Of a stretch of 64,000 nucleotides of DNA, positions 9,535 to 42,375 are shown piece by piece; positions within the stretch are counted from its first letter, which is position 1, and each line of letters opens with the position of its first letter. This stretch comes from Anthoceros angustus (taxonomy: Eukaryota > Plantae > Anthocerotophyta): NCBI GenBank assembly GCA_010909165.1, contig MU008162.1, positions 186,001-250,000 on the forward strand. The letters run 5' to 3'. The position numbers were made by a program, and so were the translations under genes. The notes beneath the pieces are model-generated. The model was not told the origin of the DNA, did no database searches, and saw only the letters and a list, made by a program, of their open reading frames with translations.

Positions 9535-9584
9535 TGACGTCATCAGTCTATCCATATAAGACGTTCCGACTTGGCAAGCACGTG
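9535..9584. promoter_or_regulatory. Putative bZIP/bHLH sites (TGACGTCA, CACGTG) with a TATA-like motif in the divergent NSI/RING intergenic region
   Basis: TGACGTCA at 9535-9542, catataag at ~9553, G-box CACGTG at 9579-9584. Function not demonstrated. Confidence 0.3.
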
Positions 9585-20751: not shown

Positions 20752-23454
20752 TCAACCCTTACAACTGCAACAACCAGCTGCGAATCGATGCACACGGTAG
20801 CCATCCCTTACAACAATGTCTCTCTGTTCAAGCCGTGACATAATCTCCGTGGAGCTGTGGCAGTCGCTGCACATGCGTAGATTCTTCGTTACCACCAGAG
20901 GTGTCCCACTAGGAGTGTTCAAGAGACCAAACGCCAGAGCTAGCTTCTCAGCATGCCCACAAAGCACATCTTCCTTTTCCTTCTCACACAGTGGCTTCAA
21001 CACCAACTTCGTGTGAGGTACGTGGCCTCCTTCCTGCTTCAGACGTACACTTGTACTCTCTACCTTAAGCGCAATATCCTCTCTGGCTTCCCCCACCAGA
21101 AATCTATGTACCTCCTTATTCACTTCAATGCTCGCCACTGCAGGTTTCTTGTTAGCTCCTGCTGCCCTTCTCTGTCTTTCAATCCTGTCTACATCGGTCC
21201 ACCTCCCTGCATCTGCGTAGGCATTGGCCATGAGCACATATGCGGCTGCCTCCTTGGGGTCTAGCTCAACAATGCTTTCAAAACACCACGTCGCTCTCTC
21301 TATATCCCCATGACTCTTGCAGGCATTCAGCAAAGACATCAAACCCACGACATCCCTTTTGCCCTCACATGACAACAGCATCTTCTGGGCCGCATCTAAG
21401 TGGCCCGCACGCCCAAGAAGATCAATCATGCAGGTGTAATGCTCAATAGTAGGTTTGATGCCATGCTGTTCAGTCATGGAATCAAAGAGTTTGCGACCCT
21501 CGTGAACCAGTCCCTGATGACTGCATGCAACTAGAAGGCAACTAAAAGTAGCACCATTAGGCTGAATACCGGCAACTAACATCTCCTCAAAACAGGCTAG
21601 TGCTCTGTGGCCGTCATCACAAATACCATACCCAGATATCAGTGCCGTCCATGTAACCACATCCTTTGTGGCCATGCCGTCAAACACCTGGCGTGCATTT
21701 CTCAGTTCACCACATTTTGCATACATGTCTACCAGGCAGCTGCCCAACACTACGTTATCCAACAATCCTCTTTCCACAATCTGTGAGTGCAGCTGCGTGC
21801 CCGTCTGTAAGGCACCAGTGCTTGAACAGGCCTTCAGAAGGCAAGCAAAAGTAACATGGTCAGCCAAAACAAGGCCCCCCTCCTCCATTTGTCTATACAG
21901 AAAAAGCGACTCATGTCCAAGCCCTTGCTCGGCGTACCCAGCAATCAGCACCGTCCATGTCACCACATCCCTCGTGGCCATGCTGTCAAAAACCTGGCGT
22001 GCATCTTTCAGTTCACCACACTTTGCATACATGTCCACCAGGCAGTTGCCCACCACTACGTCATCCAGCAGTCCCCTTTTCACAATCTGTGAGTGCAGCT
22101 GCCTGCCCTTCTGTAAGGCACCAGTGCTTGCACAGGCCTTCAGAAGGCAAGAAAAAGTAACATGATCACCCAAAATAAGGCCCGCCTTCTCCATTTTTCC
22201 ATACAGAAGAAGCGCCTCATGTCCAAGCCCGTGCTCAGCATACCCAGCTATCAGAGCATTCCATGTCACCACATTCTTAGTGTTCACGCTGTCAAAAACC
22301 TGGCGTGCATCATCCAGTTCACCAAATTTTGCATACCCAGCTATCAGGGCATTCCATGTCACCACATTCTTCGTGGCCATGCCATCAAAAACCTGGCGTG
22401 CAGCTTTCAGATCACCACACTTTGCATACATGTCCACCAGGCAGGTGCCAACAAACACGTTCAGGGGAATCCCACTGTGCAATACATCACAATGCACTTT
22501 CCTGCCAGATTCCAAGTCCGCCGCAAACGTACAAGCTTGGAGGGCAGCTACAAAGACGTGGGCATCCGCATTCACTCCTGACCTGCCCATCTTATGGTAC
22601 AGCTGTATGGCCTCCTTAGGTTTCCCATGCTTGGCATATGCAGAGATGATGGAAACCCACATGAAAGCATCTGGTTTGGCCACCCTGGTGAACACATCCA
22701 TGGCCTCCTGCAGCCTACCTCCGCTTGCATACATGCGCAAGATATGGTTCCCCAAGTAGGCATCCGACTCGTACCCGAGTTTGAAAGTGAGGTCATGAAC
22801 TCGCCGCCCCACAGCCAGATCCTTCTTAGCTGTACACAGTTTCAGCACGGTGTAAAACAGAGACTGAGAAATAGCAACAGCAGAGTCTGTCAGCGCCAAA
22901 GATTCCAGGGCTCCCACGGCCTCAGAAAGCTTCCCCTGCTGACATAACGTGCTCACGGTTACAGCCGTAACGACGCCCATATCCAATTCTGCACGCCTTC
23001 CAGGTTCAGGCTTATCCGGAAAGGGAGAGCTCCACTTGGAAGGAGAGGCACCATGACCCATCTGCATATCCAAGGAAACGAGCTGCTCATCAACCCAAGC
23101 TGGCTTAAACAAGTTGTCTAACCACAGCACCTCGCCGGACCCCTTACGCCGGAAATCAGGCGAACGGGAGCTCTTCTTGTCTGGTCTCCTGTCCCACCAC
23201 ATGGTAGGATCCAGAAACAATTGTTGCCACAAGTGCTCCTGCTCCTGGCGACGACCATCGATCCACAACCCGTCCCCAGCCACACATTTTCTCGGAAGCG
23301 GAAATGCTGGGCTCCTTACACTGCTACACATGGAGGCTTGGTTGGTTGCCGTGGATTGACTCCCTGAGGCTGCGATGGGCTTGGCAGGAGCTTCTCGTAG
23401 AATCCCAGCACACCCACCAATTTGTTGGGTCGACAATAGTCTCCCCCGACGCAT
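20752..23454 (-). CDS. PDF-motif + PLS-PPR + DYW:KP (GRP-like) RNA-editing factor, intronless
   Basis: WWDRRPDKKSSRSPDFRRKGSGEVLWL motif; PLS array; KKPAVASIEV box; HAEKLA, NLRMCSDCH; ends CSCKG* followed by a Pro codon. Confidence 0.93.
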   Translation of the reverse strand: MRRGRLLSTQQIGGCAGILREAPAKPIAASGSQSTATNQASMCSSVRSPAFPLPRKCVAGDGLWIDGRRQEQEHLWQQLFLDPTMWWDRRPDKKSSRSPDFRRKGSGEVLWLDNLFKPAWVDEQLVSLDMQMGHGASPSKWSSPFPDKPEPGRRAELDMGVVTAVTVSTLCQQGKLSEAVGALESLALTDSAVAISQSLFYTVLKLCTAKKDLAVGRRVHDLTFKLGYESDAYLGNHILRMYASGGRLQEAMDVFTRVAKPDAFMWVSIISAYAKHGKPKEAIQLYHKMGRSGVNADAHVFVAALQACTFAADLESGRKVHCDVLHSGIPLNVFVGTCLVDMYAKCGDLKAARQVFDGMATKNVVTWNALIAGYAKFGELDDARQVFDSVNTKNVVTWNALIAGYAEHGLGHEALLLYGKMEKAGLILGDHVTFSCLLKACASTGALQKGRQLHSQIVKRGLLDDVVVGNCLVDMYAKCGELKDARQVFDSMATRDVVTWTVLIAGYAEQGLGHESLFLYRQMEEGGLVLADHVTFACLLKACSSTGALQTGTQLHSQIVERGLLDNVVLGSCLVDMYAKCGELRNARQVFDGMATKDVVTWTALISGYGICDDGHRALACFEEMLVAGIQPNGATFSCLLVACSHQGLVHEGRKLFDSMTEQHGIKPTIEHYTCMIDLLGRAGHLDAAQKMLLSCEGKRDVVGLMSLLNACKSHGDIERATWCFESIVELDPKEAAAYVLMANAYADAGRWTDVDRIERQRRAAGANKKPAVASIEVNKEVHRFLVGEAREDIALKVESTSVRLKQEGGHVPHTKLVLKPLCEKEKEDVLCGHAEKLALAFGLLNTPSGTPLVVTKNLRMCSDCHSSTEIMSRLEQRDIVVRDGYRVHRFAAGCCSCKG

Positions 23455-24739
23455 CGCCTTGGCCTGGAGCCCACAACCAGGACGGTGGAAGGCAAGTGTA
23501 CATAGGGTGCCACCAAATTAGGTTTCCATGGTTTGGTGGAAAATCCAAACTCATCTACCTCTTCCACCTTTCCCATCGTCTGTCCAGTGCGAATTGTACT
23601 TCCGACCCATACACCCTCTCTTATGCTCCCACACAGTTTTGGGCTGCTCCTCTGTGCGTAGCGTGGGTGTGACACTGTGAATATACCCACACTACACACA
23701 GTGTCACCCAGTCCCAGTAGTGCACGTTCACAGTTGCTTAGTTTCAGTCGACTGTGGAAGCAAGGCAAGAGATGTGGCCGGAACTGGGACGATTGGGAGT
23801 TATGGCATATTCCACCGGTCCCAGTGCTCAGCAAGCAGCAGGCAGCACGTACATTCCAGCATCAGACCCAGCATCAAACCCGGCCCAGCATCAACATAAC
23901 ATTACTGTTGTACCCATCAGAGCCATCCCAATGCCTCAATTGGTCTCGTTAACGTCTTAACCTGTCCGCTGTGCCCACACTCATCCATGGATGCATACGC
24001 ACGATGGCAATGCATGCATCAGTACTAGTGTGCGTGAAAGCCGGCGACACATTCCATGCATGTCTAATGTCTCTTGGGCACGCCCTTCATCATTCACGCG
24101 CCCCTAAATCGCGAGGCGCCAGCCAGCTCCGGTACCAATCGGAATCGGCAGAGGCAGCAGCACCCATCAGAGCAATTTGCAAGCATGGGCTCCGGGGCAG
24201 TTTCCATGATGTGGATCTGTCTTGTGCTGCATGCTTGGGTCGATTCGGCCGAAGAAAAGATGCCGAGGAGCTGGCCCGATGAAAAGGCAGCTGACAGCTT
24301 TGTGGGCTCTACAGGGGAAGGAGGAGGTATAGCCCGAAGCGGAAACGACGAGGAGGGGACGGGACGGAACAGGGGAAGTAGGAGGTATAGCGGAGGGCGG
24401 ACGGAAGCCCTTGTCCAATCCCAGAAGCGGAACGGAAACGGAAACGGAAAGGGGATCCGGAACTGTTGGTACTACAGGGTGGGGAGACTCAGCCGCCCAG
24501 AATTCATCAATGCGGCGCGAGGAAGCTCGAGTCCACCGACGGGCTTCCGGTGCGTCTGTTACGGGAGATGGAGGAGGTATAGCAAAGGGCGGACGGAAGC
24601 TCTTGGGGGGAACGGAAACGGGACCTGGTGGTACACACCACACTAGGAGCTGTTGGAGGCCTAGGGAACAGGAACGGGAACGGGCCAAGGACAAGGTGCC
24701 AAGCTCCACGCCATAACAAAATTAAAAAAAAGGTAGAAT

Positions 24740-25030
24740 ACCATCTTGACTACCTAGGCTAGAGATAGAATACATCTTGACTACCTAGGCTAGAGGTCGA
24801 TGTGGTCGTTCCTCGAGCCTTCTGGTTTGGAAAGGATCCTATTAGGGAGTGCATATTGATTATGATTTTTCACTCTATAGATGATCACCTCCAGGTTATG
24901 TTTCACTCTATAGATGATCACCTCCAGGTTATGAAGGCTAGATCTATGTTACAGACAACTCAGTTATATATCAATGAGGATCTTACATCATTGCAACTCA
25001 GTTATATATCAATGAGGATCTTACACCATT
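24740..25030. repeat. Cluster of short tandem duplications (~31, 30 and 38 bp)
   Basis: catcttgactacctaggctagag x2; tttcactctatagatgatcacctccaggttatg x2; caactcagttatatatcaatgaggatcttac x2. Confidence 0.8.
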
Positions 25031-26840
25031 GCAATGGAAGACTAAGAAGGAGAAGTTACCCACTTTCAGAGCAGCTCGTGCTGTAGGTCAAGTGGCTTTC
25101 TTTCGTGGGGATGAATTGGTGGTGTTTGGCCCTTGTTCACGCAATTTCATTGACAATGTTGATTGATTGAAGATTATTTATCTTATTTAATTTTTACCTT
25201 TACATTAGTCCAGATTATTTTACCACAATCTATGTAGTTATCATATTTCAATCCCATGACGGAAATCCGTCCTTAATAGACTTAAATAAAATTCTTCTTC
25301 TTCTTCTACCTACCTATTAGTCCAGTGTCCTATTTAGGCTGCACTCCAACACTTCAGTGGGCTTTGGATTTGCTGAAGGTGTTGTACTAATACCTATTAG
25401 GTTGTATTATTATATATAAAAATATAAAAATATTTTGTAAATATTATTAATAATTTTATAAATTACAATTGCTAATTGATCTTGTTGGTTATGCAGGCCT
25501 AGTAGATGAGGTACAAAAGTTACTACCATCATGTTGAAGCCAAATTAATGTCATGGGGTTGATGTGTTGCTGAACACCTAAAAAAAAAGATGGGACATAG
25601 AGAACTGGTGCTCACCTTTGAGCCTACAAATATAATGGGGATTTAGAGAACTTGTGCTCATGCCTAAGAGCCAATGGATTGAAAGCATTCGAGACCTTTC
25701 AACACTAGGCTAGCACAACTTCAGATGTACTAGAAACAGAATGAAAGATTGGTGACTTCATTCAACTGATGATATTCAACTGATTTTATTCATTCTAATG
25801 ATATATTTAGTTTAAAGTAAAAATAATTATGTTTTAACATAAAATAGATGATGATTTTGTATAAATAAAAAACTTCTGAGTTTTGAGAACCGTGCGCTTC
25901 TCAAACCCCCCTAGGCAGCGCATGGAGACATAAGGGCTCATGGGATGGAGCTGCCCGACGAGGCTGCGGCGCTGCCCAGTTTGGGGCCATTGCGTTTTTG
26001 GACACATTCCTTGCATCGCTTCGGGTGTGCATTTCAACGTTTCACCGGTTCCCGAGAAATACTTTCTATCGTCCGACAGCCACTTGTCCGTGTGACCTGG
26101 GACAGGAGTCGCAAAATGTGCATGGATGCCCGCCCGTTTCGCGCTTCGAGCCATGGACACCATGGCATGCCTCTAGGTTCTATGCCTCATTCTCTATCCA
26201 ACCTCTTCTATTATCCTACCTGCCTTCCCATCCGTCGTCTCAACCATGGGCGACGCCTGGAGATCCATTCAGCGGCCGTCATGCGCGTAATCGCCTCCCT
26301 AGCCCTCGGTAATGCCATACCCGATGTTACCATGCCCCCGCCGCCAGTGGTGAAGACGATATAGACTTATGGAGGCTATAGCCAAGTGACCACCCCAGTG
26401 TTGAGCATGCGCTACTCCCAACAACATCAAAGCCATGGCATAGAGTTCGGACTTTCGAGAAAGTTCATTATGGTGGGATCCCATGACATGAAAGGCAACC
26501 GCAACCCCGAGCCCGGAGGATATGGGAAAGTACCCTGTTCGCCGTCCCAGGAACTAAACTGTTCTAGATGTGGAGCCACTTGTGGATCATAGATACCTCC
26601 CTCTCTTGTCTACGGGAGAGCGTGCTTGCCAAGATTCTATCCTCTTTCCTGCACCAACATATAGATGAGAGATTTTTATGGCTGTACATGTGCACCATTC
26701 TAAAGACCTGGGATTGCTGAACTGTGCCCACGAGAGTGGCAGAGATCTAGAAGAGAAGCACAGCAGCTGCCTAGCTAGAGCTTGTGTGCAAGCTTATAAT
26801 TACGACGAGTGTTGCTGGCATATTTAATCTTGGGCACAAT

Positions 26841-28121
26841 ATGGATCTGTGCAGGTTCACTGCGAGTCTGAGGTGTGCCCGTTCTGGTAGTAGCGACTGC
26901 AGATCTAGAGCAGAGGCTGTCCTACAACAAGGCCCTGCTAATTCTTCTTTTTTCTTGACACTTCCAGTTTCTTCTACCTTGAGGCACAAGACTCTTTCTG
27001 TGTCTGTCAGATGCGAGGCCGAGGTGGATGCTCGCACAACGCCTAGGCATGTTCCCGTTGGCAGGCCCAAGCCGGTGATGGGCGATGATGGTGGCCTTGG
27101 CCATGGCGCTGGCATGAACACCAGCGTGCTGACGTCTGTATACATGGATTTCCTGCACAACATGTCCTTCAACAATTCCCGGGAAACCTGCTACCCTGAC
27201 CGGCTGGACACCATGATCGCACGGGTGAGAGAAAACGGCGGATCCTTCATGCCGGATCGGTACATCAACATGGGAGCTGCGTTCGGGAATTTGGTATTCA
27301 GCCTCCACCCCGAGGACGTGCAAGCCAAGATCGGACATTTCACCGCTCTGTTCCTGCTGGTGGACGATCTGGCAGGGAAGCTGACGGGGGCGGCGCGAGA
27401 GAGGTACCTGGAGGACATCCGCTTGTTCCAGATGAAGTTCGCGGACCCAGAAGGGTACGCGAGGCGGTACCCCGGCCGGGGCGACCTGCACGAGGCGCTG
27501 GAGAAATTCATCGTCTATCTCAAGACGGAGCAGAACCCCTTCCTCCCCACGGAGCTCCGGCTGCACAGCATGATGATCAAGTCCGTGCTGGACTTCATGG
27601 AGGCCAACCTGCAGGAGCAGCACTACGAGCACGATCCGATCGAGTACACTGCTGACATGGCCCAGCTGCCCAGGTTCCTCCGGAACAAGTCCGGCATAGC
27701 TGAGCTCTACGCGTACTTCCTCATCATGCCGACGTCGTCCTCGGGCTCTGCCTCGGAAGATGAGCACTTCTTCTACAACAACCTGTATCCCATGGTCCCA
27801 GAGCTTGTCGACGTGATTAACTTCGGCAACGATGTCATGTCGTTCTACAAGGAGGTGCAGGCAGGAGAGGATTCCATCGACATTGTGAACTACTCCAAGA
27901 TTCACAACCTGCCGCTTCTTCAGTCTCTTCGGGACAGCATGGAGACTGTGATCCTTTCCAGGACGAGACTGATGACCTTGGTCGACAGGACTGGTTCTAA
28001 GGAGACCAAGGACAAGCTTGTGAGATTCTTGCAGGGATATCTGAGTTGGCATCTTGGGGTCAGACGGTATAGGTTGGGTGAAGTTTTGTGTGGGTGGTAC
28101 AACGGCGGCTACTGGGCATAG
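26841..28121 (+). CDS. Microbial terpene synthase-like protein (MTPSL), trichodiene synthase/Tri5-type, intronless, putative plastid transit peptide
   Basis: Class I terpene synthase motifs LVDDLA, FLRNKSG (pyrophosphate-sensor Arg), NDVMSFYKE (NSE/DTE), WH..VRRYRL (RY pair); no seed-plant-type N-terminal domain; Ser/Arg-rich leader ending SVRCEA. First ATG is 26841 (the ORF-track start is GTG). Confidence 0.88.
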   Translation: MDLCRFTASLRCARSGSSDCRSRAEAVLQQGPANSSFFLTLPVSSTLRHKTLSVSVRCEAEVDARTTPRHVPVGRPKPVMGDDGGLGHGAGMNTSVLTSVYMDFLHNMSFNNSRETCYPDRLDTMIARVRENGGSFMPDRYINMGAAFGNLVFSLHPEDVQAKIGHFTALFLLVDDLAGKLTGAARERYLEDIRLFQMKFADPEGYARRYPGRGDLHEALEKFIVYLKTEQNPFLPTELRLHSMMIKSVLDFMEANLQEQHYEHDPIEYTADMAQLPRFLRNKSGIAELYAYFLIMPTSSSGSASEDEHFFYNNLYPMVPELVDVINFGNDVMSFYKEVQAGEDSIDIVNYSKIHNLPLLQSLRDSMETVILSRTRLMTLVDRTGSKETKDKLVRFLQGYLSWHLGVRRYRLGEVLCGWYNGGYWA

Positions 28122-29001
28122 CCTTTCAACACGTGCTTGCAAGATAATCAGAAAATCCTTGCAAATGTGCTCACTGCAGCTGCATTCGTAGACTAGATTA
28201 GATTGATAGATAGATATATCGATTTCTTTAAGAAGAAGAAGATGTGATTGAAGCTTGTCCACAAAGGATGTTATATGGTGTATTGTGGGGTACTATAAAA
28301 TCTCGATTCTCGAAAACGGGTTACTCACACGCAACCCAAATGACAATGATGTCTCCTAGCTTGTGAGACAGAGGGGTAAGCTTAGATCTTAACCAAGCAC
28401 ATTATTTGAATGAATAATCAGATCAGCCTATCCAGCTGTTGTGTGTGTTTGCCTAAACGCACCAGCAGCACCCGTAAAGCCACTCTTCGCTTTCCCACGA
28501 GATGCCCGTAGTAAGCTCACATCTTTCCGTTTGGGATGGAAGTTTTTCCTCTAGGGAGGGAGAGGAACAGGAATGCTTCGTTGCTCAAGGCTTGCATCAA
28601 CGGAACCATGCCAGCACTTCCTCTCCCAGATGCCAACACTAGGGCCGAGGGTTGACGGCCTTGAAGGTGTACGAGGACGTGGCCACTCAAGGCATCAAGG
28701 CATCCATAGGGCTGCAGAATTACAAGTCCCCGGGCGGCGGGCGGCCTTGTCTATAATGTATGCAAATTCAAGTCCCCGGGTGGCCCTGTCTAATGGCTGC
28801 AAATTCGCTTTACTTTTCGTGAATCCAAATGAAATTTCCAATGATCAATATCCCAATGATTCAGAGCAACTTCGTTTCTGAACCAACTTGGTTGAGTCCA
28901 AATGCAGTCCAAGGGCACTCAACTGCCATGCGTAAGGCAAGTCCCCATACCAGCCTGCAACTGAGCGTTCAGACTCTCTTAATTGTTTGGCACTGGGCAG
29001 A

Positions 29002-31257
29002 CTAGAAGTGGTGAGTAGCCTGGATCCTGATTGGGACACCGTTGTTGGGGCATGGCAGACCCGACAAGTCTCGGCCACTGTCTGGCTTTTCTACTGTCCA
29101 CCTGTTAATTCAATACCAGTTGAGATCGGTCAGATCAGATAATAGTCCAATGGACAATTTTGCTATATATAGGGGAACATCATTAATGGGGTCGCACCTG
29201 AACTTGAACATCAGATGATGCAACATCACTTTCATCTCCATTAGTGCCAGATCCTTCCCAAGGCACAACCTCTGTCCACCTCCAAATGCCAGCAGGGTGA
29301 AAGGCTTCGGTGGCACCTGTAAATTCATAGCCACCAAACGCAGTGTCTCAATCTTGATTGCTCCCAAGATGTCTAAATGATTCGGAGATAGTCGACTGTA
29401 CATAATGATTCCTAATATATGTTGAATTCAAGCATCAGGGTAGGCTGCTTACATCGAAGCGAGAGGGATCGAACGCGTCCGGGTCTTGGAAGATTTCTGG
29501 ACTATGGTGCAAGTTGTGAGTGTCTAGCATAAGGTTCCAGCCTTTAGGGATGTGGTACCCTGCAGTGGCACATGTATGTGTGTCAGACGCACATTGCTTG
29601 GAGCAATGCTAGGTGCAGCATACATACCGTTGAATACGAAGTCCTCCTTGACCCGTCGATGCCACCAGAAAACGACAGAAGACACTCGGAGTGCCTCGTT
29701 GATCACCTGCATGTATACATAGGACAAGTCAGATATCGATCGTCTACTCTTAGGACGCCAGCTTTGAGTGAGCGGTAGGGCGGAGAATATCAACATTTGT
29801 TGAGGAGGGATCCGAGACTCACTTTCAGGGTGTAGCTCATTGGTTGTCCGAGATCCGCCCATGTCAGTGGCTCACCAGCTTGTTTGTTACTTCTCACTGC
29901 CAAATGCTCAGCCTACAGTTCAATGTACAGACAGAAAACTTGAAGGTAGAGCTCGCCTGGACAGCCAAGATATTCTGGACACCTGAAATTGTTTTCATAT
30001 GGACAAGCTCACCAGCAGCTTCTCCTTGACGCTGGGATTCTCATGAAGCAGCTTGACAAGCCAGGTGAGTGTGGTGCTCGCGGTCTCAAAGCCAGCAATG
30101 ATGATGCTGAAAAGATTGTCCCTCAGCTGCTCGTCGCTCAGGGCAGGCTTGTCGCTGGAAGATTCGGGGTCGACTGCGTTCATCATGTCGTTCAGCAAGT
30201 CGCTGCGGACAATTTTCCCGCTCCTTCTCAACGCGAATTCGGTGTCGAACATTCTGAGCAGCTCCCTTCTTGCCTGCACGCCCCATTGCAACCTTGGAGA
30301 AATGGACACTCTGCTCCAATTTAAATTTGGATTCGGCCAGGGCTTGAATTCGCACCTTCATGGCCTTGTGAAAGGCGAATCCAGGAAGATCGATGGGCGC
30401 CTGGAGCAAATTGTTACTCACTGTTTCGGTGAGCTCCAAGCTCCTCTCACGCTCTGGACCAGGGCCCCAGCTCAGCGCCACTCGCGCGATCACGTGATAA
30501 GTGAACTGTGCACCGTCAGCAGCAGCTACCAGTTAGAAAGACTCACTGTCAGCCGATGCTTTGGTGTGGTGGTCGGGCACACAGCACAGTTCAAAACGAC
30601 CCGGGCTCGAATCTTCTTCCCTTGAAGAATCACAATCAGCTGGTACCAGCGCTCACGCATTGCAATTTGCAGGCAAACGAGCAGGGTTGGGACTAGCCGA
30701 CTAGCCTTGATGGCCTCGTGTTTTATGACGCGGACGTCGCCCAGTCTCCAGGAACTGAGCGTCTCCACAGCCGTTTGCTCCACCAGCGGCAGATACTTCC
30801 TGATGCTCTCGGCCAGGAAGGTTTCGTTCAACAACTTGCGATACAGCTTGTGCCTGGGGCCGTGCACATTGAGCATCGATTCCTGGCCCAGAATCTTGTT
30901 CACGGGAGGGAACTGGTGCGCCTGCACCAGCTTCTCCTCGCTGGTGACCAGCAGCTTGGCCGCCTCGGCGCCCCTGAAAAACACATACGGACTCCCGAAC
31001 ATGTGCGACTTGAACACATTGCCATACTTGCCAAAGCGCTTCATCCTGAACGCCTCCGGATCCCCGGCCTTGAAGCAGCCCAGCAGCTCCATCGTCTCTC
31101 CCAGCAGCGGGAGGCCCATGCCCCCCGGCAGCTGCTTCGATCCCTCGGGCGCCCATGCCCCCCTCCGCTCCCAGTACCTCCACGCTGGCCACGCCACAGC
31201 CACCACCGCAACTACTGCAACCGCCACCAGAATCTCCACACCCACCGTCACCTCCAT
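29002..31257 (-). CDS. Cytochrome P450, CYP85-clan-like, 8 exons, apparently intact
   Basis: TM anchor then LPGGMGLPLLGET; I-helix AGFETAS; K-helix EALR; FDPSRF; heme motif FGGGQRLCLG; last exon WTVEKPDSGRDLSGLPCPNNGVPIRIQATHHF* with TAG at 29002. Intron 1 appears to use a GC donor. Confidence 0.9.
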
Positions 31258-31512
31258 GGCTGCCGTGCGATGTGGGTACTTTCCATAACGCAATGCCGTG
31301 CTATGTACTGGTGCTAGTCTGTAGACTTCGAAAACAACGCCTAAATGCGAGTTCATCTATTGCCCAAAGAGAGCTAAGGATCCATACTTGTCCACTATTC
31401 TATGGACTAGTGCTGCCTAGGAAAACCTGCCTAAAAAGGGGAGTCGATCCATGTAAAAAGGGGGAGTTGATCGATATCCAAAAGACAGTGCTAAAGGATC
31501 CATACAGTCCAC

Positions 31513-31862: not shown

Positions 31863-32039
31863 GATATCTTTGTTAGTTTCCATATTCATCACAACCATCT
31901 GTTCTCAACTCTTGGGATGCTCCTTTATTGTTGCCATCCCGGTCTCCATGTGCTGAAGTTATTGTAATGAGGTCTATTTATGGTAGAAAATACGATTTTC
32001 GTCTTATCTATCCACATCTTTATGCCCATTGCCTTGAAT

Positions 32040-32985
32040 AACGCTCTTGCTTGCTCATGCGAATAACGCTCTTGCTTGCTCATGCTTCTTCGCAATACGA
32101 AAAACTTGGAAAAACTTGGAAAAACTTGGAAAAACTTGGAAAAACTTGCTCCAACATAGGAGGCAGGACCTACTCACCCTACTCTAAACCGGATAGGAAC
32201 AGGTAAATGAAGAAAGAAAAAAATCACTTTTTTACTCATTAAGGTAAAATTTCATATACATTGGATAAATATAATAGGTGAAAACCAAAACTGATGGATA
32301 GAACTCAAAACTAGAAGCTAGAAAACAGAACTCGAGGATAAAAATTGGAACTAATGGGTAGAACTAGTGGGTATAAAACATTCACCAAATGGCTGTGACT
32401 GCTGCTGTTCACAACTTGCCTTGCATGATTGTGACTGCTGCTCCCCTCAACCTGCCTTGCATGCTTATGACTGCTACTACCCACAACCTACCTTGCATAG
32501 GCTGTGGGGTGCTGGTCTTGCTGCTACTTGGCTGTTATGTTGTGCCCGTGAGGTTAACCTGTAAGCGGCGCAAGTGTCTGCAGTACGTGTATTATTGTTG
32601 CATGTGTCTGCAGGACCTATTACTGCTTTTTTACCAAACCCCCAGCTTTGTGCGCTTCGTGGGGATCTGCTTTTTGTTTTTGTAGCTCTTGTAGTTGATT
32701 TGTTTCTATAGCTGATTATTTCTGTAACTGATTTGTTTCTGTAGTTGATTTGTTTCTATAGCTGATTGTTTCTGTAACTGATTTGTTTCTGTAGTTGATT
32801 TGTTTCTATAGCTGATTGTTTCTGTAGCTAATTTTTTCTGTAGCTGATTTTTTCTGTAGCTGATTTTTTCTGTAGCTGATTTTTTCTGTAGTTGATTTGT
32901 TTATGTAGCTGATTTGTTTATGTAGCTGATTTATTTTTGTAGCTAATTGTTTGTATAGCTGATTTGTTTCTGTAGCTGATTTATT
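32040..32985. repeat. Short tandem arrays: aaaacttgga x~5 (32100-32148), ~33-36-bp unit x3 (~32395-32500), tagctgatttgtttctg-type array (32690-32985)
   Basis: Directly visible periodicity. Confidence 0.85.
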
Positions 32986-33009
32986 AAGCATTTTCTTGTG
33001 TGTTCATCT

Positions 33010-34300
33010 TTGCAGGCAATGTCCTGGGATTCAGTCGATCAAATGATTGATGATGTACGCGATATGCGCGACTTGCGTGCCGATGCAGATTTGGACATGG
33101 ATGTCCATAATCCGAATACTCCAGAGGAGTATCCACCTGTAGACCATGATTTGGAGAGGGATGAGGTACTCTGACGGGCAGCGGTAGAACGTAAAACTGA
33201 TGAAGAATTGAAGAAACCATACCTGCTATCCGGTGACGAAATTGAAACAGCTATAGCAAATGGTATTTGTTTATATTTAATCTGTTTTTAACCATGTTCA
33301 TGTTTAACATTTTTAGTGAATGCCTTGTTGTAGCAGTTGTTAAGAAACACAATGAGAGAGCACTCGTAAAAACTAACGATATGTTGGTTTTGGTGGATGC
33401 GCGACTGCAGTTATCCAAATCGAAAATGGTAAGCCTTATGTTATTTCTGATGTATTATTTTATTCAAATTTAAATTTGATAAAATTAAATTTCGCAGGAC
33501 TTGAAAAAGAATACAAGATTGACGAACAAGCTTTATAAGGAAACTGTAGGTGTGAAGAATTTGCATCAGAACATTGAAGAAAATGTGTCTCATATCATTC
33601 AAGTAAGTTTTGCTTTGAGCAATAAATTGCTTATTTTATTTTATTTTTCCTCAAATTAGTATGATTAATTGATGCAGATTGTCAACAACACTTACCACAA
33701 AATAGAGGCTGTTGAAACTAAAGTCAACAAGATAGAGGATATTTGTGAACACTTGGAAACCATAGTGGACCAAAGACTCGTAAAAGTCTATACCGTGAAC
33801 AATATTCCCCCCAAGTGGTCCTCGAGTTCGCCACGTAGCAATTCTTCCCAATATCATTTTATTGGGGATACAGAGGACACTCCTACTATGATAGAAGATG
33901 ATCGTGTTGAAGACCCTGGCAGCAATAGTCTCCAGTAAGCTTCCTTAAGTGCTTGAGTTTGAATGATTGACAGTATCTAAAAATGAATTACTATTTTGTG
34001 CAGGCTGGAAGGCACACTACCCTAAGACATGCCAAACAAAAAGAAATTAAACAATAGTAATTTTTATTCAGTTATGTATATTTTAATGTCTTGCTAATAA
34101 GAATATACACTTTTTGTTTACTAATACTCTCTTTGGTAAATGCAAAGCTGTTGAACACCTTATTTGACAAAGAGTTGGCTGCAGAAGATCTCTTGATGGT
34201 CTTAAAGAATCCTGATTTACTGGACAAAATCAGAACATTAAGTTTTTATCAAAAAAGCGTTTATATTGCAAGTTCAAAGATATATCTAAATTACTTATGA
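33010..34300 (+). other. AT-rich intron-containing gene-like relic, possibly a transposon accessory gene
   Basis: Several short open exons bounded by ag/gt (ttgcag|GCAATG at ~33015, cgcag|GAC at ~33498, tgcag|ATT at ~33678); no recognisable domain. Confidence 0.3.
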
Positions 34301-37300
34301 ATTATATTTACTCATTTTTTATTTACCTTATTGCACGCAATCGATAACGAGCATTTTGGGATTAGTTCCACGCTTCTTGAAAATTCTGTAGTGGAAGGAT
34401 AAAACTTGGACCTAAAAACTAATATTTACGATAGAGATCTAGTGCAGCCTTGACATGTTTTGGAGCAACCTTTGTCTATACAAGGCTCATACGTCGCCAC
34501 GATCGAGAAAGGAGCGGGTCTCACCTCCTATCACGGCAGTGCATTTTACGCCATGGAACTGGTGTTGGTCGGGGCGCCTGGCTTATACATGCCTCGGCCT
34601 AATGGACTCAGCATGTCCGCATTGGGACGTCCCTCCCGACGCCAGTAATAGGTATAACCTTTCTCCGTAATAGGAAAAACTTCCTCCAACGTATAACGCT
34701 TCTCCACAATAGGAAAAACTTGCTCCAACGTATAAGTTTTACCATATACTGTTGTTAGTTCTTAAAAATCATCATCCCTTATGTCTTCATCCAGGTTTGA
34801 AATATACTTGAAGCACACCTTGATTTCATTGTGCATTCCCGTATCCATCACAAGTTGGCTAGTTCAATAGTAGAGCATCAACCTAGTCTTGTCAAGCTTC
34901 CTCTTCCAGTTGGCCAACTCTTCTATTTTCATTAGGTTGATTGATGGAAATCTAAGTTCTAACATGTGGAGAAAAAAATTTGACAAGCTCCGAGTTCTTA
35001 CTATTAACAATGAACTCCATGAAAATTTTCAAATAAAACTTGTATGCATCATTGAAGCAAAGAAAATTCTTACTTAGGCTCTAAGTTTACCTCTTCCCCT
35101 CCATTCTCTTGTAATTTTAGTAGAACATGCACATTAATTGGTTGATAGATACTGATGACTTTGGGTGCTCTGAATACTTCTCACCTTTTGCTGGTAATAG
35201 AATTCCCCCTCTAGTCTTCTTCTCCACTACAAGGGTTTTGTCTATGGAGGAGCCTAATATTTGCTCTGCACTGTTGCCTACCAGTTTTAGTCCTCTACTC
35301 TCACATACTTGTTTTACTTGTTCATTAGATAGCTCACAAGTTTTGTCATTCCCATCTTCCATTAGCTCTCTCTCTTTTAGTTCAAATCCTCTCTCTTCAG
35401 GCATAACTATCTCAACTCTTCATTAGTCAGGCATGTTGTTCTATTCTCCTCATCCACTGCTATTTGCCTCTCCTGTCCACTCCTCTAATTCATGTTAGAG
35501 TTCCTATATTCATACATCTGCCTAACTTCCTCATGTGTCAAGTTTGAAACTTCAGGCGCTTCTAGTCCTTCTCACTTTCATTAGGACATCACTCTCTTCG
35601 CCCTCACCACTCCCCCAACTATTACAGATACCATTATTTTTAAGAAGCTCCTTGCACCCAAGTTTAAGTTCTGGAGGTCTACCTCTCCCTCTGCAAATAG
35701 GTGTTTCACTGGGTAGCTCACAAATTTCTACCATGTTGATTGTTGTACTTGGCTCTCCTTTCTAATTAGATTCCTTTACAGAGGCCCTAGTCACTTTGAT
35801 ACTTTTAGTTGTAGGTCTTCTCATTTCAAAAAGTTTATTTGATGGCTATGAGTATGTGTGGGATGACTTTTGCTAGTAGGGCTAGCAAGGTGTACACTTA
35901 TAACTTAATGTCGATGTAGTACTAGGGTCGTTCCACAGCTTATTGTACCTAAGCTCCACAACTTATTGGCTAAACGGGCTCCATCAGGTTGGGTCCGGTG
36001 GAAACTGCGGAGTCTAGGCATGTGCTACATAGCAACTCAACAGACCATGCACGCGACACACTGGACCTTCGTACAAGGCTCTTCTCAGGGTGTCTCAAAA
36101 ATTTGAGGTCCAACGGACTGGAACAGATTTAGCGACATGTTTCCCCATCAGACACCGTACCCTAGCACCTCTGCGCACATACCTCCTTAGCTCCACATCT
36201 TCCAACTCACAACTCTCGACTCCGCTTAACAACAACTCTAATACAATGCACAAGCCACATCGTCTTCCTTCCTTCTCCCTTTCTCACACACAGCTACTAC
36301 TAGAAACACCAACTCCCCGACGTATTCACACATGATTGCCTTTGCTCCTCCAGACTGCTTCACTTGCGATGAGGTAGTGGCTTCTCAGCTTGCAACCCCA
36401 TGGCCTCCTCCCCAGCAGCCACCAAGGATGGCTCCGTGCCACAGGTCACCCCCACAGTGCTACCTGAGCTTAGGACTAATCCTATTCTGCACCCATCAAA
36501 TGTGTTAGCGCAGCTCGTCATCAGAGCTCTCGACGCATTCCCCTACCACCAATCAATCTTGCGTGGTTATGTAGGAACACACTCAACTCCTCGAGCGCAT
36601 GACAGCATGAGCACACAGAGCGCAAAATTGGCACAAGGAATATATTATCTATTGGTCATGGGCACCAAGGCCTCCTTCTATAGCCTCCCTAAGGTTTACA
36701 TCTCGATAGCAACCCCCAACCCTAGACGCTACATATCGATAGCAAAATTAGCTGGGCCTGCCTGCTCACCCTAACCTAACCAGCCCATATACGTGCGAGC
36801 CAGATCGCAGAATCTCCATCGTATGCCACCATTTATGATGGCACCTGACTCATTGCCGCTGACCCCAAGCCCTAGGACGACGCAACCGCCAGGCCGTAAC
36901 TCATCTTGCCAAGCCGGCCTTCTTCCACCGGCCCTGCACACCCGCCAAGCGGCGAATCCGTTACCGGACTACGCTGTCATGGCTGGACCATCCCGCCAAG
37001 CCACTCCCTCCCACACTGAACCAGCTCATCTCAACGAACCAGTCCAGCAGTCGCCGGTCCACCTTGGTCTCCAACAAACCGAGGTCTAGGATTGCACTTT
37101 AAGTGCAAGTTAGCTAAAAATGGCCTTATTGGCTATTAAACTCCGCCCTATCCCTAATAAAAAACAACAGCTCAAAAAGAAACAAAATTAAACAAGCCGC
37201 CGAGGTTATGAACGTCGGATTTGGCACTCTACAGTATGAACTCGCTAAACTTTTGCTATACCCTCTAGATCAAACTAGTTTGTATTTGAACCATCAAGAA

Positions 37301-37440
37301 AACAGTGTAGAAACTAGGTGTTCAAAATCTACATGTCTAGGTGCATTCCACACCAAGTTCTCCTCTACTTCTTCTTCCCAATCTCTTTACAAGAGTTGCT
37401 ACATCTTGGAAGTGTCTTGAACTATTATCGGATCGGCCTT

Positions 37441-38110
37441 GGCAGCGTGGTGAGCGGCGTGGTAGGCGGCGTGGTGAGCGGCGTGGTAGGCGGCGTGGTG
37501 AGCGGCGTGGTGAGCGGCGTGGTGAGCGGCGTGGTGAGCGACATGGTAGACAATGTGGTTGACGACGTGGTTGACGACATGGTAGACGATGTGGTTGAGG
37601 ACGTGGTAAGTAAACGACGTTGTAAACGATGTGGTGAACGACGTGGTTAATGACATTGTAATTAAGGTTGTACTCTAGGTTGTAAAGTAAGAGTGTATGA
37701 AGGTTTTAAATGAGGTTGTAGCGTATATTGTAAAATACGTTGTAAATAGACCCACTTTTACAATCTAGTTAAGCTGTCAGACTACAACCTCCTATTAACA
37801 ACCTACTTTACAATCTAGATTACAAGGCAACCACGTTGTAAATGGCGTTGTCATTTAGGTTGTAAACGAGCACAACATTGTAAATGGCGTTATAAACTGG
37901 CTACCCGGATACCTTGCCCGCACGATTAGCTTAGTGTGGCCGGCATGGACGTCAGCAACTTGATGACGTGGCAATCTTCCCTGCCACATCAGCAATTTTA
38001 CAACTTAGTTAAGCTGTTAGTCTACAAACGTATAAATATCCATTTTTACAACGTGAGATTGTAAATCACATTGTAAAATGCGTTGTAAAACACCTGTGAT
38101 TTTTGTAATG
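37441..38110. mobile_element. CACTA/EnSpm-like right end with subterminal repeats and 12-bp minisatellite
   Basis: gcgtggt(g/a)(a/g)gcg tandem array at 37441-37540; many gttgtaaa/tttacaa motifs in both orientations; terminates ttttgtaatg, one change from ...TTTTGTAGTG. No left end found. Confidence 0.55.
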
Positions 38111-38339
38111 CATAGGGCAAATTATTTAGAAGTAGACATTTTAAGCCCAAAGTGTGAAAATTTGAGGTGGGATCTCGACCATGTATACTTGCAAAGGAAG
38201 ACTATGACTACAATTGACACAAGTGCGAGCAAGATAATATTAAGGGTTTAAAAGAGATGGAAAGTATACCTGTCGAATGGGGGTAGGTACACTTATGTTT
38301 CTAAGCAATCAGATGAGACCAGACATCTCCAACACCGAA

Positions 38340-38662
38340 AATGCTATTGCACAGTTCTTTGAGAATCAATCTAGGCAAAGATCACTAGATTGCTCTTAAG
38401 CCTCTAATGCAGTACCTCAAGGGTACACCGAACTTTGGCATGTGCTATAGACCTAATGGAAATAAGCACCTTCTACTTACATGCTTTGTAGACGAAGATT
38501 GGGCTTCAGATGCTGATACCCAAAAGAGTATCTCTGCTGATTGCTTCCTAACTGGATCCACTGTTGTCAAGTGGTCATGCTGCAAGCAAGCGGCGTTTTC
38601 TCTATATTCAATAGAGTCCAAGTTGAAAGCTCTCACTAAAGCCACTAAGGAGGCTGAGTGGG
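38340..38662 (+). mobile_element. Ty1/copia RT-RNase H junction relic
   Basis: QYLKGT...CFVDEDWASDADTQKSIS...VKWSCCKQ...ALTKATKEAEW. Confidence 0.8.
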
Positions 38663-39035
38663 AGGCGTGCATTACCAAGGTCCCGCGTGCTTCCCGCCGT
38701 GCACGGCTCCCGGGTGGAAGCCGTGCTCCGATAGCCCAATGGCCGCCCGCAGCCCCGCGCCTCCCGCTCCCACAACCACCGCATCGTATGTGTGGTCAAT
38801 GACCGAGTAGGACGCTCTCTCCCCGCCCTCCTTTTCCGCAGGCGCTTCTCGGCCCAGGATCCGAGACCCTCCCCGCGCGGCGTTGCCATGCATGGCTCGC
38901 CTAGCCCCAGCGATGATCGTCGGCCTCACCACCTTCTTCCGCCTGCTAGGGCCTTCAACATCCTCCTCTTCTTTTCTTTCTAGTGAAAGCTCCTCCTCTT
39001 TTTGTTTGAAGGGGGCGTGCACTAATTTTTGTGTT
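38663..39035 (-). pseudogene. SDH1: Rearranged 5' fragment copy of the SDH1 locus
   Basis: Matches 50996-51420, including upstream acaaaaa.tagtgcac.gccccc.tcaaacaaaaa, the ATG region and [27 protein letters not shown]; the last 19 bp (ggcgtgcattaccaaggtc) is inverted. Confidence 0.88.
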
Positions 39036-39435
39036 TTCATATAGCCACGTTAGGCATCACTTTGTATAAGCGTTTATACTAGCGTTTGTATTCTAATTGG
39101 TAGTGTATAATAAAGGTAAGGGCTGGAGCCTTGGAAGCCCTCGAGTCCGTTTTTTGCCCATGCAATTTGTGGAGGCCCACGACTTCGTGTTTTGCCCATG
39201 CCATTGGTGGAAGCCCTCAAGTTCGTCTTTTGCCCATTCATGGGTGACTGTGTGTTGGGAGTAGGGAGATGAACAGGGAATCCCCAATTCCTAATTTCCT
39301 ATGGAAAGCTTTGTGTGCTTGTTTGGGTTACCCACTCGTTAATCGTCGTCTCAAGTCTGAGACAATCTCTACAAAAGAGTTTCCTACAAGATGGGCATCA
39401 CCTTGGTGCTGCGTGCGTGTGGGTTGTGTGTTGAA

Positions 39436-42375
39436 TCAATGCCGGTCTCCGCATGAGCATGAGCCATCCAGGAAGCGGTGGACACGATGGACATCCCTCA
39501 CGATGATCTCTCGCTTCTCCAGGCGGGACATGATCTTGGTGCTGCTGTGGCAGTCACCGCACATGCGGAGGTTCTTGGTCACCATGAGGCTGGTGCCAGA
39601 TGGGGTGTTTAGGAGGCCGTATGCCAGGGCCAGTTTCTCAGCATGCCCGCATAGGGAGTCCTCCTTCTCCTGCTCGGACATGGGCTTGAGGACCAGGTCT
39701 GTTTGTGGGACATGACCTCCCTCTTCCTTCACCCGGGTGATCATGGTCTTGAGCTTGGAGGAGATTTCGCGCCGGTCTTCTCCTACTGTGAATTCGTGGA
39801 CCTTGTGCTGTACTTCGATGCAGGCTTTGGCGGCCTTTTTCTTGGCTCCTGCTGATTTTCGTAGGCTTTCTAGCCTGTGGACGTCGTCCCACCTGGCTGC
39901 GTTGGCGTAAATGGTGCCCAGGAGGACGTAGGAGCTGGCGTCGTCGGCTTCTGATGATGATGTGAGATGGTTGAAGCATCGGATTCCGCGCTCGATGTCG
40001 TGGTGGGTTTTGCATGCGGATAGCAGAGCTGTCCAGCCCACCACGGTGTTTGCAAGTGACACGGTTTGGAGAAGATGCTCGGCTTCGTCCAGGCGGCCTG
40101 ACCGGCCCAAGAGATCAACCATGCAGTTGTAGTGGTAGTCGCTTGGGACTATGTTATGCTCGTCCACCATCTGCTTGAATATCCGTTGCCCTTCCTGTAC
40201 CAGGCCTGCGTGACTGCATGCCACCAGAAGGCAGACAAAGGTTCTTTCGTTGGGACGGATGCCTTGTTCAAGCATGTTGTGGAAACACCGCATTGCCAGT
40301 TCGCAGTTGCTGTGTTCTGCGTACCCATTGAGCATGGCATTCCATGTGACCACATCCCTGCTGGGCAGTCTGTCGAAGACGTTGCAAGCGTCTTCCAGGC
40401 TCCCAAACTTTGAATACATGTCCACCAGGCAGTTTCCGATGCGGATATCCAGTTCCAGACCCAGTTCCCGGATCTGGGAGTGGAGCTGCTTGCCCTGCTG
40501 CACTGCTCCTACACTGGCACATGCTTGAACAAGGCACACAAATGCCACATGATCGTCTGGAGTGATGCCCTCGTGCTGCATACTTGCATACAGAGCCAGG
40601 GCTTCTCTTCCCAACCCCTGTTGGGTGTAGCCTCCGATCATGGCTGTCCATGTCACCACATCTTTCCAGGGCAAATTGTCAAACACTTCTCGAGCGTCTT
40701 GCACACTCCCGCATTTAGCATACATATTCACCAGGCAGCTACCGATGAATGCATCAACTTCCAAGCCTCGCTCACGAATCTGTAAGTGGAGCTGCTTCCC
40801 CTGATGCAGAGCTCCCACACGGACACATGCCTGCAGCAGGCATGCAAATGTGACATGACTGGCAGGAGTGATACCCTCCCTCTGCATACCAGAATACAGA
40901 GCCAGGGCATCTTCACCCAGCCCCTGCTGCATATAGCCTGTGATCATGGCATTCCATGACACCACATCTCTCGTGCGCAAACTGTTGAAGATTCTGCGAG
41001 CAGCTCTCAAGCTCCCACATTTTGCATACATGTCCACCAGGCAGTTACCGATCCGCACGTCGCCCTCAAGTCCTCGTTCCCGAATCTGTGAGTGCAGCTG
41101 CTTGCCTTCCTGCAGGGCTCCCACACTGGCACAGGCTGAAAGAAGGCACACGAAGGTGACATGGTCCGCAGGAGTGATGCCCTCACGTTCCATAGAGGCA
41201 TAGAGAGCCAGGGCTTCTCTCCCACGCCCCTGCTGAGTATATCCTGCAATCATAGTATTCCATGTCACCACACATCTTCTGGGTAAACTGTCAAACACCT
41301 TGCGAGCATTGTCCACACTCCCACACTTGGCATACATATTCACCAGGCTGTTCCCCACAAACAGATCGGCCTTCACAGCACTGGCCTGAATATCAGCATG
41401 CACCTCCTTCCCAGAAACCAGGTCCTGTGCTGAGGCACACGCCTTGAGGACTGCCACAAAGATATGGTTATCAGGCTTCACACTGGCTTCCCGCATCTGT
41501 CGATACAGGTTGATGGCCTGAGAGGGTTGTCCATGTCTTGCATGTGCCAAAATAATGGAAGACCACATGTAGACATCAGGGACAGCCACCTTTCTAAACA
41601 CCTGCACTACATCCTCCAATCTGCCATGAGAAGCATACATACCGATCATGTGGTTAGCCAAGAATGCGTTTGACTCGTGCCCACATCGGACAGCCAGATC
41701 GTGAACCCGCCTAGCCAACACCAAGTCCCTCCTGGCCTTGCACTTCTTGAGCACAAGATACAAAACGGAATCAGTGACTTGACGTCCACGATCCACAAGG
41801 AGCTCCAACCCTTCCACAACCTCGCCCAACTCAACGGCCTCAGAAAGCTTCCCCTGCTGACATAACGAGTTCACGATTCCAGCCGTAACGACGCCCATTT
41901 CCGATCCTGCGGGCCCGCCAGGTTCAGACCTATCCCCAGACCTGGACTCGGAAGGAAAGGCACCATGACCCATCTGCATATCCAAGGAAACGAGCTGCTC
42001 ATCAACCCAAGCTGGCTTAAAGATGCTGTTTAACCACAGCACCTCCCCGGACCCCTTCCGGCGGAAGTCAGGCGAACGGGAGCTCTTCTTATCACGTCTC
42101 TTGTCCCACCACATGGTAGGCTCCAGAAACAAACTTTGCCACAAATGCTCCTGCTCCTGCTCCTGGCAACGACCATCACTGGCAAACCTGTCCGCACCCA
42201 CACATGTTCTCGGAATTGGAAGCGCTGGGCTCCTTCCACTGCTGCACCTAGAGGCTTTGTTTGCCAGGGGTTCAATCCGTAAAGTGAGGTGAATGGGAGC
42301 TCCAGGGAGAATCCCTATACACACACCAATTTGTTGGGTCCGCGACAGGTCCGGTTGCCATACTGCGGCCATCAT
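39436..42375 (-). CDS. PDF-motif + PLS-PPR + DYW:KP (DRH-type) RNA-editing factor, intronless
   Basis: WWDKRRDKKSSRSPDFRRKGSGEVLWL; long PLS array; KKKAAKACIEV box; HAEKLA, NLRMCGDCH; ends CSCGDRH*. Confidence 0.95.
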   Translation of the reverse strand: MMAAVWQPDLSRTQQIGVCIGILPGAPIHLTLRIEPLANKASRCSSGRSPALPIPRTCVGADRFASDGRCQEQEQEHLWQSLFLEPTMWWDKRRDKKSSRSPDFRRKGSGEVLWLNSIFKPAWVDEQLVSLDMQMGHGAFPSESRSGDRSEPGGPAGSEMGVVTAGIVNSLCQQGKLSEAVELGEVVEGLELLVDRGRQVTDSVLYLVLKKCKARRDLVLARRVHDLAVRCGHESNAFLANHMIGMYASHGRLEDVVQVFRKVAVPDVYMWSSIILAHARHGQPSQAINLYRQMREASVKPDNHIFVAVLKACASAQDLVSGKEVHADIQASAVKADLFVGNSLVNMYAKCGSVDNARKVFDSLPRRCVVTWNTMIAGYTQQGRGREALALYASMEREGITPADHVTFVCLLSACASVGALQEGKQLHSQIRERGLEGDVRIGNCLVDMYAKCGSLRAARRIFNSLRTRDVVSWNAMITGYMQQGLGEDALALYSGMQREGITPASHVTFACLLQACVRVGALHQGKQLHLQIRERGLEVDAFIGSCLVNMYAKCGSVQDAREVFDNLPWKDVVTWTAMIGGYTQQGLGREALALYASMQHEGITPDDHVAFVCLVQACASVGAVQQGKQLHSQIRELGLELDIRIGNCLVDMYSKFGSLEDACNVFDRLPSRDVVTWNAMLNGYAEHSNCELAMRCFHNMLEQGIRPNERTFVCLLVACSHAGLVQEGQRIFKQMVDEHNIVPSDYHYNCMVDLLGRSGRLDEAEHLLQTVSLANTVVGWTALLSACKTHHDIERGIRCFNHLTSSSEADDASSYVLLGTIYANAARWDDVHRLESLRKSAGAKKKAAKACIEVQHKVHEFTVGEDRREISSKLKTMITRVKEEGGHVPQTDLVLKPMSEQEKEDSLCGHAEKLALAYGLLNTPSGTSLMVTKNLRMCGDCHSSTKIMSRLEKREIIVRDVHRVHRFLDGSCSCGDRH

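Follow-up and report, generated by a model that had tools for sequence, protein, structure and literature searches.

A domain homologous to the OSB PDF motif precedes the PPR array of two KP-like editing-factor genes in Anthoceros angustus

The usual description of a plant organelle editing factor is a presequence followed by an array of pentatricopeptide repeats (PPRs), an E motif, and a DYW domain. The organellar single-stranded DNA-binding (OSB) proteins are built from an N-terminal SSB-like OB fold and then one to four C-terminal copies of the PDF motif. We analyzed a 64,000-nucleotide (nt) stretch of the Anthoceros angustus genome (positions 186,001 to 250,000 of contig MU008162.1 in GenBank assembly GCA_010909165.1), hereafter called the window, that carries two genes in which parts of these two plans are joined. 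Each gene encodes a single N-terminal module of PDF type, followed by a PPR array and a deaminase domain. Sequence searches and predicted folds together make it almost certain that this module is a homolog of the OSB PDF motif.

Both are intact nuclear genes, with intronless open reading frames (ORFs) on the minus strand and zero internal stops. Gene 1 (20752-23454) encodes 900 amino acids (aa) and gene 2 (39436-42375) encodes 979 aa. The order of parts is the same in both proteins: a leader, the 65-aa PDF motif, a linker, a PLS-type PPR array, an E motif, and a KP-like DYW deaminase. Pfam assigns the PPR repeats, the E_motif, and the DYW_deaminase domain to each of them (2e-77, 1e-15, and 3.6e-32 for gene 1; 2e-86, 5e-11, and 4.6e-35 for gene 2). 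At E<=1, the same scan places no domain on the first ~165 residues of either protein, and no SSB/OB domain in either of them.

The leader of gene 1 (aa 1-69; 23248-23454, minus strand) is presequence-like in composition, its first 65 residues containing eight Arg or Lys, two Asp or Glu, 11 Ser or Thr, and nine Ala. In gene 2 the leader covers aa 1-72 (42160-42375, minus). Each leader is probably an organelle presequence. The PDF domains that follow occupy aa 70-134 of gene 1 (23053-23247, minus) and aa 73-137 of gene 2 (41965-42159, minus), and are 89% identical over 65 aa. Both contain the motif LWQxLFLxPTMWWD..PDFRRKGSGEVLWL..KPAWVDEQL. A preliminary annotation of this DNA, made by a model from the letters alone and here called the sequence-only reading, had located this motif in both genes at ~23080-23233 and ~41992-42145, and the domains as now delimited span both intervals. 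A tblastn search found no third copy of the motif within the window.

Downstream from the PDF domain of gene 1 lies a linker (aa 135-165; 22960-23052, minus) that is of low complexity and poorly conserved. That of gene 2 (aa 138-161; 41893-41964, minus) is predicted to be flexible. The PPR array and E motif extend over 21028-22959 (minus) in gene 1 and 39718-41892 (minus) in gene 2, where the structural model has helical repeats from about aa 158. By alignment, the array of gene 1 is shorter than that of gene 2 by about 71 aa, which corresponds to two repeats. The deaminase domains span aa 810-899 of gene 1 (20755-21027, minus) and aa 887-977 of gene 2 (39439-39717, minus).

A likeness between the N-terminal module and the OSB PDF motif had been suggested by the sequence-only reading, and database searches bear it out. 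An exhaustive phmmer search with the 65-aa motif of gene 1 against 1.84 billion representative proteins gave 542 matches at E<=1e-3, 125 of them at E<=1e-10. Word-indexed protein searches with the motif region only, in both length classes, gave no match. Because the exhaustive search produced so many, this blank reflects a limit of sensitivity rather than absence. Among the 162 proteins scanned for other domains (the 150 matches listed and 12 cluster mates), 72 contain a detectable SSB/OB domain, and nearly all of the SSB-bearing matches inspected have the OB domain first and one to four copies of the motif after it, which is the OSB architecture. Several direct matches carry OSB names at their source: P0049 (“protein OSB1, mitochondrial-like”; 4e-20), P0053 (“organellar single-stranded DNA binding protein 3”; 1e-19), and P0142, an Arabis relative of OSB1 (3e-10). 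In a BLASTP comparison with the Arabidopsis thaliana protein P0184 (261 aa), which groups with OSB1, the motif matches residues 178-243 at 37% identity (E 2e-14), and this segment is the single C-terminal PDF motif of that protein.

The residues that define the motif are also retained. In an alignment of 85 PDF instances over 65 columns, W15, D27, K32, D39, and W59 are invariant, and P22, W25, R29, P38, F40, L49, W50, and P57 are nearly so; all of these are kept in both genes. PDF motifs, some 50-65 aa long, are recognized by a conserved Pro-Asp-Phe signature, whose three positions (P38, D39, F40) are thus invariant or nearly invariant among the 85 sequences; it is present as SPDFRRKGSGEVLWL in both genes.

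Structure prediction with AlphaFold2 on this alignment gave a confident model (mean predicted local distance difference test score, pLDDT, 87.7; predicted template modeling score, pTM, 0.74) that begins and ends with a helix and has three short strands or bridges in between. When the first 300 aa of gene 2 were modeled, residues 68-134 were predicted to form the same folded unit (pLDDT mostly 80-91), again with three short strands between two helices, and the segments on either side (residues 1-66 and 138-161) were disordered at pLDDT <50, with values of about 40 in the linker. A comparison of predicted folds had been suggested by the sequence-only reading. In a Foldseek search of the Swiss-Prot AlphaFold library, the only significant matches were AtOSB1, AtOSB3, AtOSB2, and AtOSB4, each at its PDF region, with probability 1.00, a TM score by query of 0.61-0.80, and a root-mean-square deviation of 0.7-1.6 A between models that are predictions on both sides; the next match had an E-value of 4. 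Most matching fold clusters in AFDB are unnamed, and the informative names among them are almost all OSB or nucleic-acid-binding.

Solved structures gave only noise in a profile search, in Foldseek, and in VIA-align wide (best Z 4.1). Scans of the 85 PDF instances against Pfam and PHROGs found no consistent family, and therefore no curated model of the PDF domain exists there. Two phage (Uroviricota) clusters in the ESM Atlas resemble the model (TM 0.60-0.62), and language-model features match Phage_gp49 clusters weakly (0.68). BFVD, PHROGs, and Pfam did not back a connection with phages, which is therefore an unsupported lead.

The collection of matches includes some unusual proteins. Tandem arrays of seven to 13 PDF copies occur in P0001, P0002 (Kingdonia uniflora), P0008, and P0003 (Cladocopium sp.). 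Reviews describe the PDF motif as confined to green plants, but the protein from the dinoflagellate Cladocopium raises the possibility that it is not. In another match, the 1526-aa protein P0043 from Coptis chinensis, a kinesin motor domain is combined with a weak SSB match and three copies of the PDF motif; the combination may stem from a merged gene model and not from a genuine fusion.

Comparison of the two genes with each other reveals how selection has acted on the domain. By Nei-Gojobori estimates, the ratio of nonsynonymous to synonymous divergence (dN/dS) is 0.73 for the leader, 0.28 for the PDF domain (amino acid identity 0.89), 0.95 for the linker (over aa 135-200 of gene 1), and 0.16 for the PPR array. 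Synonymous divergence itself is strikingly uneven: the N-terminal segments have dS values of 0.23-0.63, but those of the PPR, E, and DYW parts exceed 2 or are saturated. Third-codon-position identity is likewise 0.70-0.87 inside codons 34-185 of gene 1 (22900-23355, minus) and 0.23-0.60 elsewhere. DNA similarity between the genes runs from 24 nt after the ATG to about 30 nt before the stop, with no homology in the flanks.

Because silent divergence is low in the N-terminal block and near saturation in the rest of the genes, we infer that a block of ~450 nt, which comprises the end of the leader, the PDF domain, the linker, and the start of the array, was exchanged or homogenized between the paralogs long after their bodies had diverged. 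This mosaic pattern suggests gene conversion or a module swap as its source. Within the block, synonymous divergence is alike in the PDF domain and its flanks (pS 0.20 vs. 0.27, p = 0.47), whereas nonsynonymous divergence is fourfold lower in the domain (pN 0.061 vs. 0.246; Fisher p = 4e-6). With changes of protein sequence so much rarer at equal silent divergence, purifying selection has acted on the PDF domain, and the adjoining leader and linker have drifted.

The joining of PDF and PPR modules is also found outside the source genome, and all of the proteins of this kind found there come from seed-free plants, where they are labeled hypothetical or plain PPR proteins. Among ferns, they occur in Adiantum capillus-veneris (KAI5076972.1, KAI5061374.1), Ceratopteris richardii (KAH7429238.1), and Pteridium aquilinum, the last known from assembled transcripts, in which PDF and PPR parts thus reside on one mRNA. 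The lycophyte Diphasiastrum complanatum has two loci (KAJ7570437.1, KAJ7231026.1), one of them with two PDF copies. A Logan contig encodes a version with three. The moss Sphagnum compactum has CAM6033764.1, which combines a PDF domain with PPR, E, E+, and a canonical DYW:PG domain. In the ESM Atlas, three PPR/DYW clusters of Streptophyta (127, 57, and 63 members) contain the PDF fold at TM 0.80-0.83.

These distributions revise two expectations of the sequence-only reading. It had tied the fusion to KP-type, putatively U-to-C editors, and this tie does not hold: the Sphagnum protein is of PG type, and those fern and lycophyte proteins with complete-looking C-termini end in the E motif and lack a DYW domain. 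A KP-specific fusion is thus rejected, and we conclude that the PDF domain is a general accessory to the PLS-PPR proteins of seed-free plants and not part of U-to-C chemistry. It had also treated the architecture as a matter of two genes, which is contradicted by the ESM Atlas clusters and by read depth. When contigs of four public runs were mapped on 20500-24300, the depth was 11-18 in the flanks and rose to 10^3 to 10^5 inside the gene 1 ORF, including the PDF segment 23040-23293, where summed depth is not copy number. Given these depths, Anthoceros angustus and a relative have very many contigs that resemble the entire ORF, with its PDF segment, at 90% or more. Thus, the Anthoceros angustus genome holds a very large family of paralogs.

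The closest outside relative of the window’s PDF domains is P0079, which is 57% identical and lies on a 19-kb Logan contig from SRR33208241. At 8340-10845 of that contig (L001), a PDF-encoding ORF is followed by a frame change and then by a PPR-E-DYW ORF with KP-like features (HVE, and CTCE at the end); the frame change marks either a broken copy or a short intron. A neighboring gene at 4405-7428 (minus) encodes a 1007-aa PPR-E protein that has a PG box and no PDF domain. In a tree of the 85 PDF instances, whose 65 columns are too few to resolve origins, the PPR-linked copies cluster (six changes vs. 13.2 when shuffled). A constraint to one PPR-linked clade gave p-AU 0.098, so that this 65-column tree neither shows nor rejects a single origin.

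What kind of editor the two genes encode was examined through the residues that separate DYW classes. According to PMC11845758, DYW:KP domains are distinguished by a K-P pair at the domain start, where DYW:PG domains have P-G, by Ala or Cys in place of Ser after the catalytic His, and by a variable C-terminal triplet. Both window proteins have the tandem PPRs, E motif, and HxE and CxxC zinc ligands that characterize PLS-class PPR-DYW proteins, and both have CSC. Gene 1 has the literal K-P pair (KKPAVASIEV), GHAEKLA, and CSDCH, and ends CSCKG at the stop without a terminal triplet. Gene 2 has K-A instead (KKAAKACIEV), with GHAEKLA and CGDCH, and ends CSCGDRH, its triplet being DRH. Both therefore read H-A-E where PG types read H-S-E, and neither has a PG pair. 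The Sphagnum protein provides the contrast of a true PG type, with EPGRTWIEV, HSE, and CSCRDYW.

By these residues both genes are KP-like and clearly not PG, and each departs from textbook KP in one feature. The earlier assignment of both to the KP type therefore stands in part: the literal K-P pair of gene 1 and the HAE of both agree with it, but the K-A of gene 2 does not. An active-site lysine, Lys88 of KP6, is described as serving U-to-C catalysis in PMC11845758, and a lysine within TKNLRMC in both genes may be its equivalent. To call these proteins U-to-C editors is nonetheless to go one step beyond their class, since the same paper describes what natural KP proteins do as still unknown.

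With the domain identified and its conservation established, the question becomes what it might do for a PPR protein. We rank contact with the transcript first, then tethering to the nucleoid, protein contact, inherited baggage, and last a redirection of the deaminase to DNA. Our preferred reading is that the PDF domain is an accessory module that binds single-stranded nucleic acid irrespective of sequence and touches the transcript 5' of the PPR footprint. We hold this tentatively and would give it a probability of roughly 45%. A PPR array and its RNA target run parallel: the N-terminal repeats read the 5' bases, and the edited base lies at the DYW domain of the C-terminus. Because of this orientation, a PDF domain on a flexible tether of ~25 aa would sit at the 5'-facing end of the RNA-reading array and would contact the transcript just 5' of the footprint. 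Such a contact could raise affinity or on-rate for single-stranded RNA, or could hold the editing site unfolded. The precedent is AtOSB1, whose PDF motif suffices on its own to bind single-stranded DNA (ssDNA), as reported in reviews that cite Zaegel 2006 (PMC6963530, PMC4166229, PMC6451138). Binding of this kind is reported for AtOSB1 and AtOSB2 only.

Three observations weigh against this proposal. First, those reviews report that OSB1 and OSB2 prefer ssDNA over double-stranded DNA or RNA. Second, the full catalytic competence of the two proteins is uncertain, given the missing C-terminal triplet of gene 1 and the absence of the KP-pair Pro from gene 2. Third, across 20500-24300, where mapped contigs are shattered by the repeat family, a same-species run marked “RNA?” covers the intergenic flanks as evenly, and to the same depth, as the DNA run of the same sample, so that its reads do not mark the genes as transcribed. 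Guessed-RNA runs of related organisms contain 20-29% of the gene 2 words, which is compatible with expressed relatives and is not proof of them.

The preference of OSB proteins for ssDNA favors a rival in which the PDF domain acts as a tether to DNA. The domain would bind ssDNA, such as the non-template strand once displaced or intermediates of replication and recombination, and so keep the editor at the nucleoid, where it would edit nascent transcripts. The reported ssDNA binding of PDF motifs agrees with this, as does the close preservation of sequence and fold relative to AtOSB1-4. However, most of the OSB-type matches listed have two to four copies, and one tethered copy may bind weakly. 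We regard the tether as unlikely, though it is the strongest of the competitors. A broader version, in which PDF-bearing editors act at the DNA-RNA interface, is more speculative still. There the domain would grip ssDNA at the non-template strand or in R-loops, and would couple editing in seed-free plants, U-to-C editing included, to transcription in the nucleoid. On this version, the absence of a PDF domain from designer KP editors might be one reason that natural KP proteins behave differently.

The PDF domain could also be a protein-protein module that serves oligomerization or docking to an editosome or to OSB-type proteins, perhaps in place of helpers that act in trans in seed plants. MORF/RIP helpers are, as far as is known, a seed-plant feature, and the restriction of all PDF-PPR proteins found to seed-free plants would fit such a replacement. 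AtOSB2 is reported to form tetramers (PMC6963530). Against this, no mapping of that tetramer to the PDF motif was found in the literature examined, and ssDNA binding is the sole activity reported for the motif. We consider this reading rather improbable.

Less probable again is that the PDF block is inherited baggage, spread or homogenized by gene conversion with little or no function, in two genes that may be unexpressed or decaying. The far greater likeness of the N-terminal block at silent sites is what conversion or a recent swap would give, and the shortened C-terminus of gene 1 and the even coverage of the “RNA?” run across intergenic flanks also point this way. Yet the nonsynonymous deficit in the domain relative to its flanks is not the pattern of idle sequence, the ORFs are intact across 900 and 979 codons, the invariant residues are kept, and the architecture persists in mosses, lycophytes, ferns, and the source genome. 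A last possibility, that the PDF domain steers the deaminase to organelle ssDNA, with DNA edited in place of RNA, is very improbable. The sole point in its favor is the ssDNA binding of the module in OSB proteins. Against it, the PPR array is an RNA-reading device, the domain also occurs on PLS-E proteins without a DYW domain, and the literature examined gave no sign that any DYW protein edits DNA.

Several other features of the window can be noted. A third PPR ORF lies at 69-1652 (plus strand; 527 aa listed), with an E motif, a PG box (KEPGQSWW), and, where a DYW domain would be, only a degenerate stub; at the left edge of the window a stop truncates its N-terminus. Directly downstream from gene 1, on the opposite strand, a single 497-aa ORF at 18624-20117 (plus) codes for a DEAD-box helicase whose C-terminal extension is SPB4-like. 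Genes 1 and 2 are separated by sequence that holds an ORF with a TRI5-like (fungal-type) terpene synthase domain at 26784-28121 (plus) and a cytochrome P450 fragment at 30526-31356 (minus). Beyond gene 2, ORFs at 52116-53456 (plus) and 56278-57243 (plus) carry a succinate dehydrogenase/fumarate reductase flavoprotein domain and a kinase/pyrophosphorylase domain of the PPDK-regulator type, respectively. As for sequence accuracy, the DNA-like run X2 from the same sample differs from the window by single-base deletions at several flank positions (20539, 23443, 23614, 24255, and 24282), whereas run X1 agrees exactly; the deletions may be indel errors in one of the data sets.

A conserved and selected domain from the organelle DNA-maintenance toolkit would add an unrecognized working part to editors, and its fusion to PPR proteins is present across mosses, lycophytes, ferns, and the source genome. 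The PDF domain, which has no Pfam model and no solved structure, is thereby known from a wider range of proteins. There is also practical weight, in that the activity of natural DYW:KP proteins is described as unknown in PMC11845758, and U-to-C tools have been built from consensus PPR and DYW parts. The two intact genes are ready-made, directly clonable constructs for comparing editing with and without the domain.

PPR proteins that carry an accessory domain are familiar from PPR-SMR proteins and from PRORP, with its NYN nuclease, and editing helpers that act in trans include MORF/RIP, ORRM, and OZ1 proteins. All share with the window genes the principle that a PPR array gives specificity while another module adds activity or contacts with nucleic acid or protein. 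Their additional domains are unrelated to PDF, however, and are C-terminal or reside on separate proteins; to our knowledge, none comes from the organelle DNA-maintenance toolkit. The PPR-DYW:KP factors of hornworts, lycophytes, and ferns, together with the designer proteins KP2, KP3, and KP6 (PMC11845758, PMC9478123), have the same PLS-PPR, E, and DYW parts with HxE...CxxC as the window genes. Further resemblances to this class are Ala after His in both genes, K-P in gene 1, and the non-DYW triplet DRH in gene 2; the K-A of gene 2 and the missing terminal triplet of gene 1 set them apart. In the passages of PMC11845758 examined, the class comprises a PPR array and a DYW domain, with no N-terminal PDF mentioned.

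With the public PDF-PPR proteins, the window genes share an N-terminal PDF region (one to three copies) followed by a PLS-PPR array. Unlike the window genes, none of these proteins is of KP type, and their PDF domains are 35-52% identical to those described here. The OSB proteins resemble the window genes in the PDF domain itself, through its 37% identity to OSB1 178-243, its predicted fold, and the invariant W, D, K, P-D-F, L-W, and P-x-W residues. Membership in the OSB family was considered and is rejected, as there is no OB domain, the PDF domain is N-terminal rather than C-terminal, and PPR repeats come after it. No paper describing a PDF domain on PPR proteins was found in our full-text literature search, which covered reviews rather than the primary papers of Zaegel 2006 and Gutmann 2020; the reviews place the motif in OSB proteins only. 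As far as that search reached, the view of the sequence-only reading that the architecture had not been characterized holds. The PDF domain of OSB proteins and the PPR-DYW body of editing factors are thus two known modules that meet here in an apparently undescribed combination.

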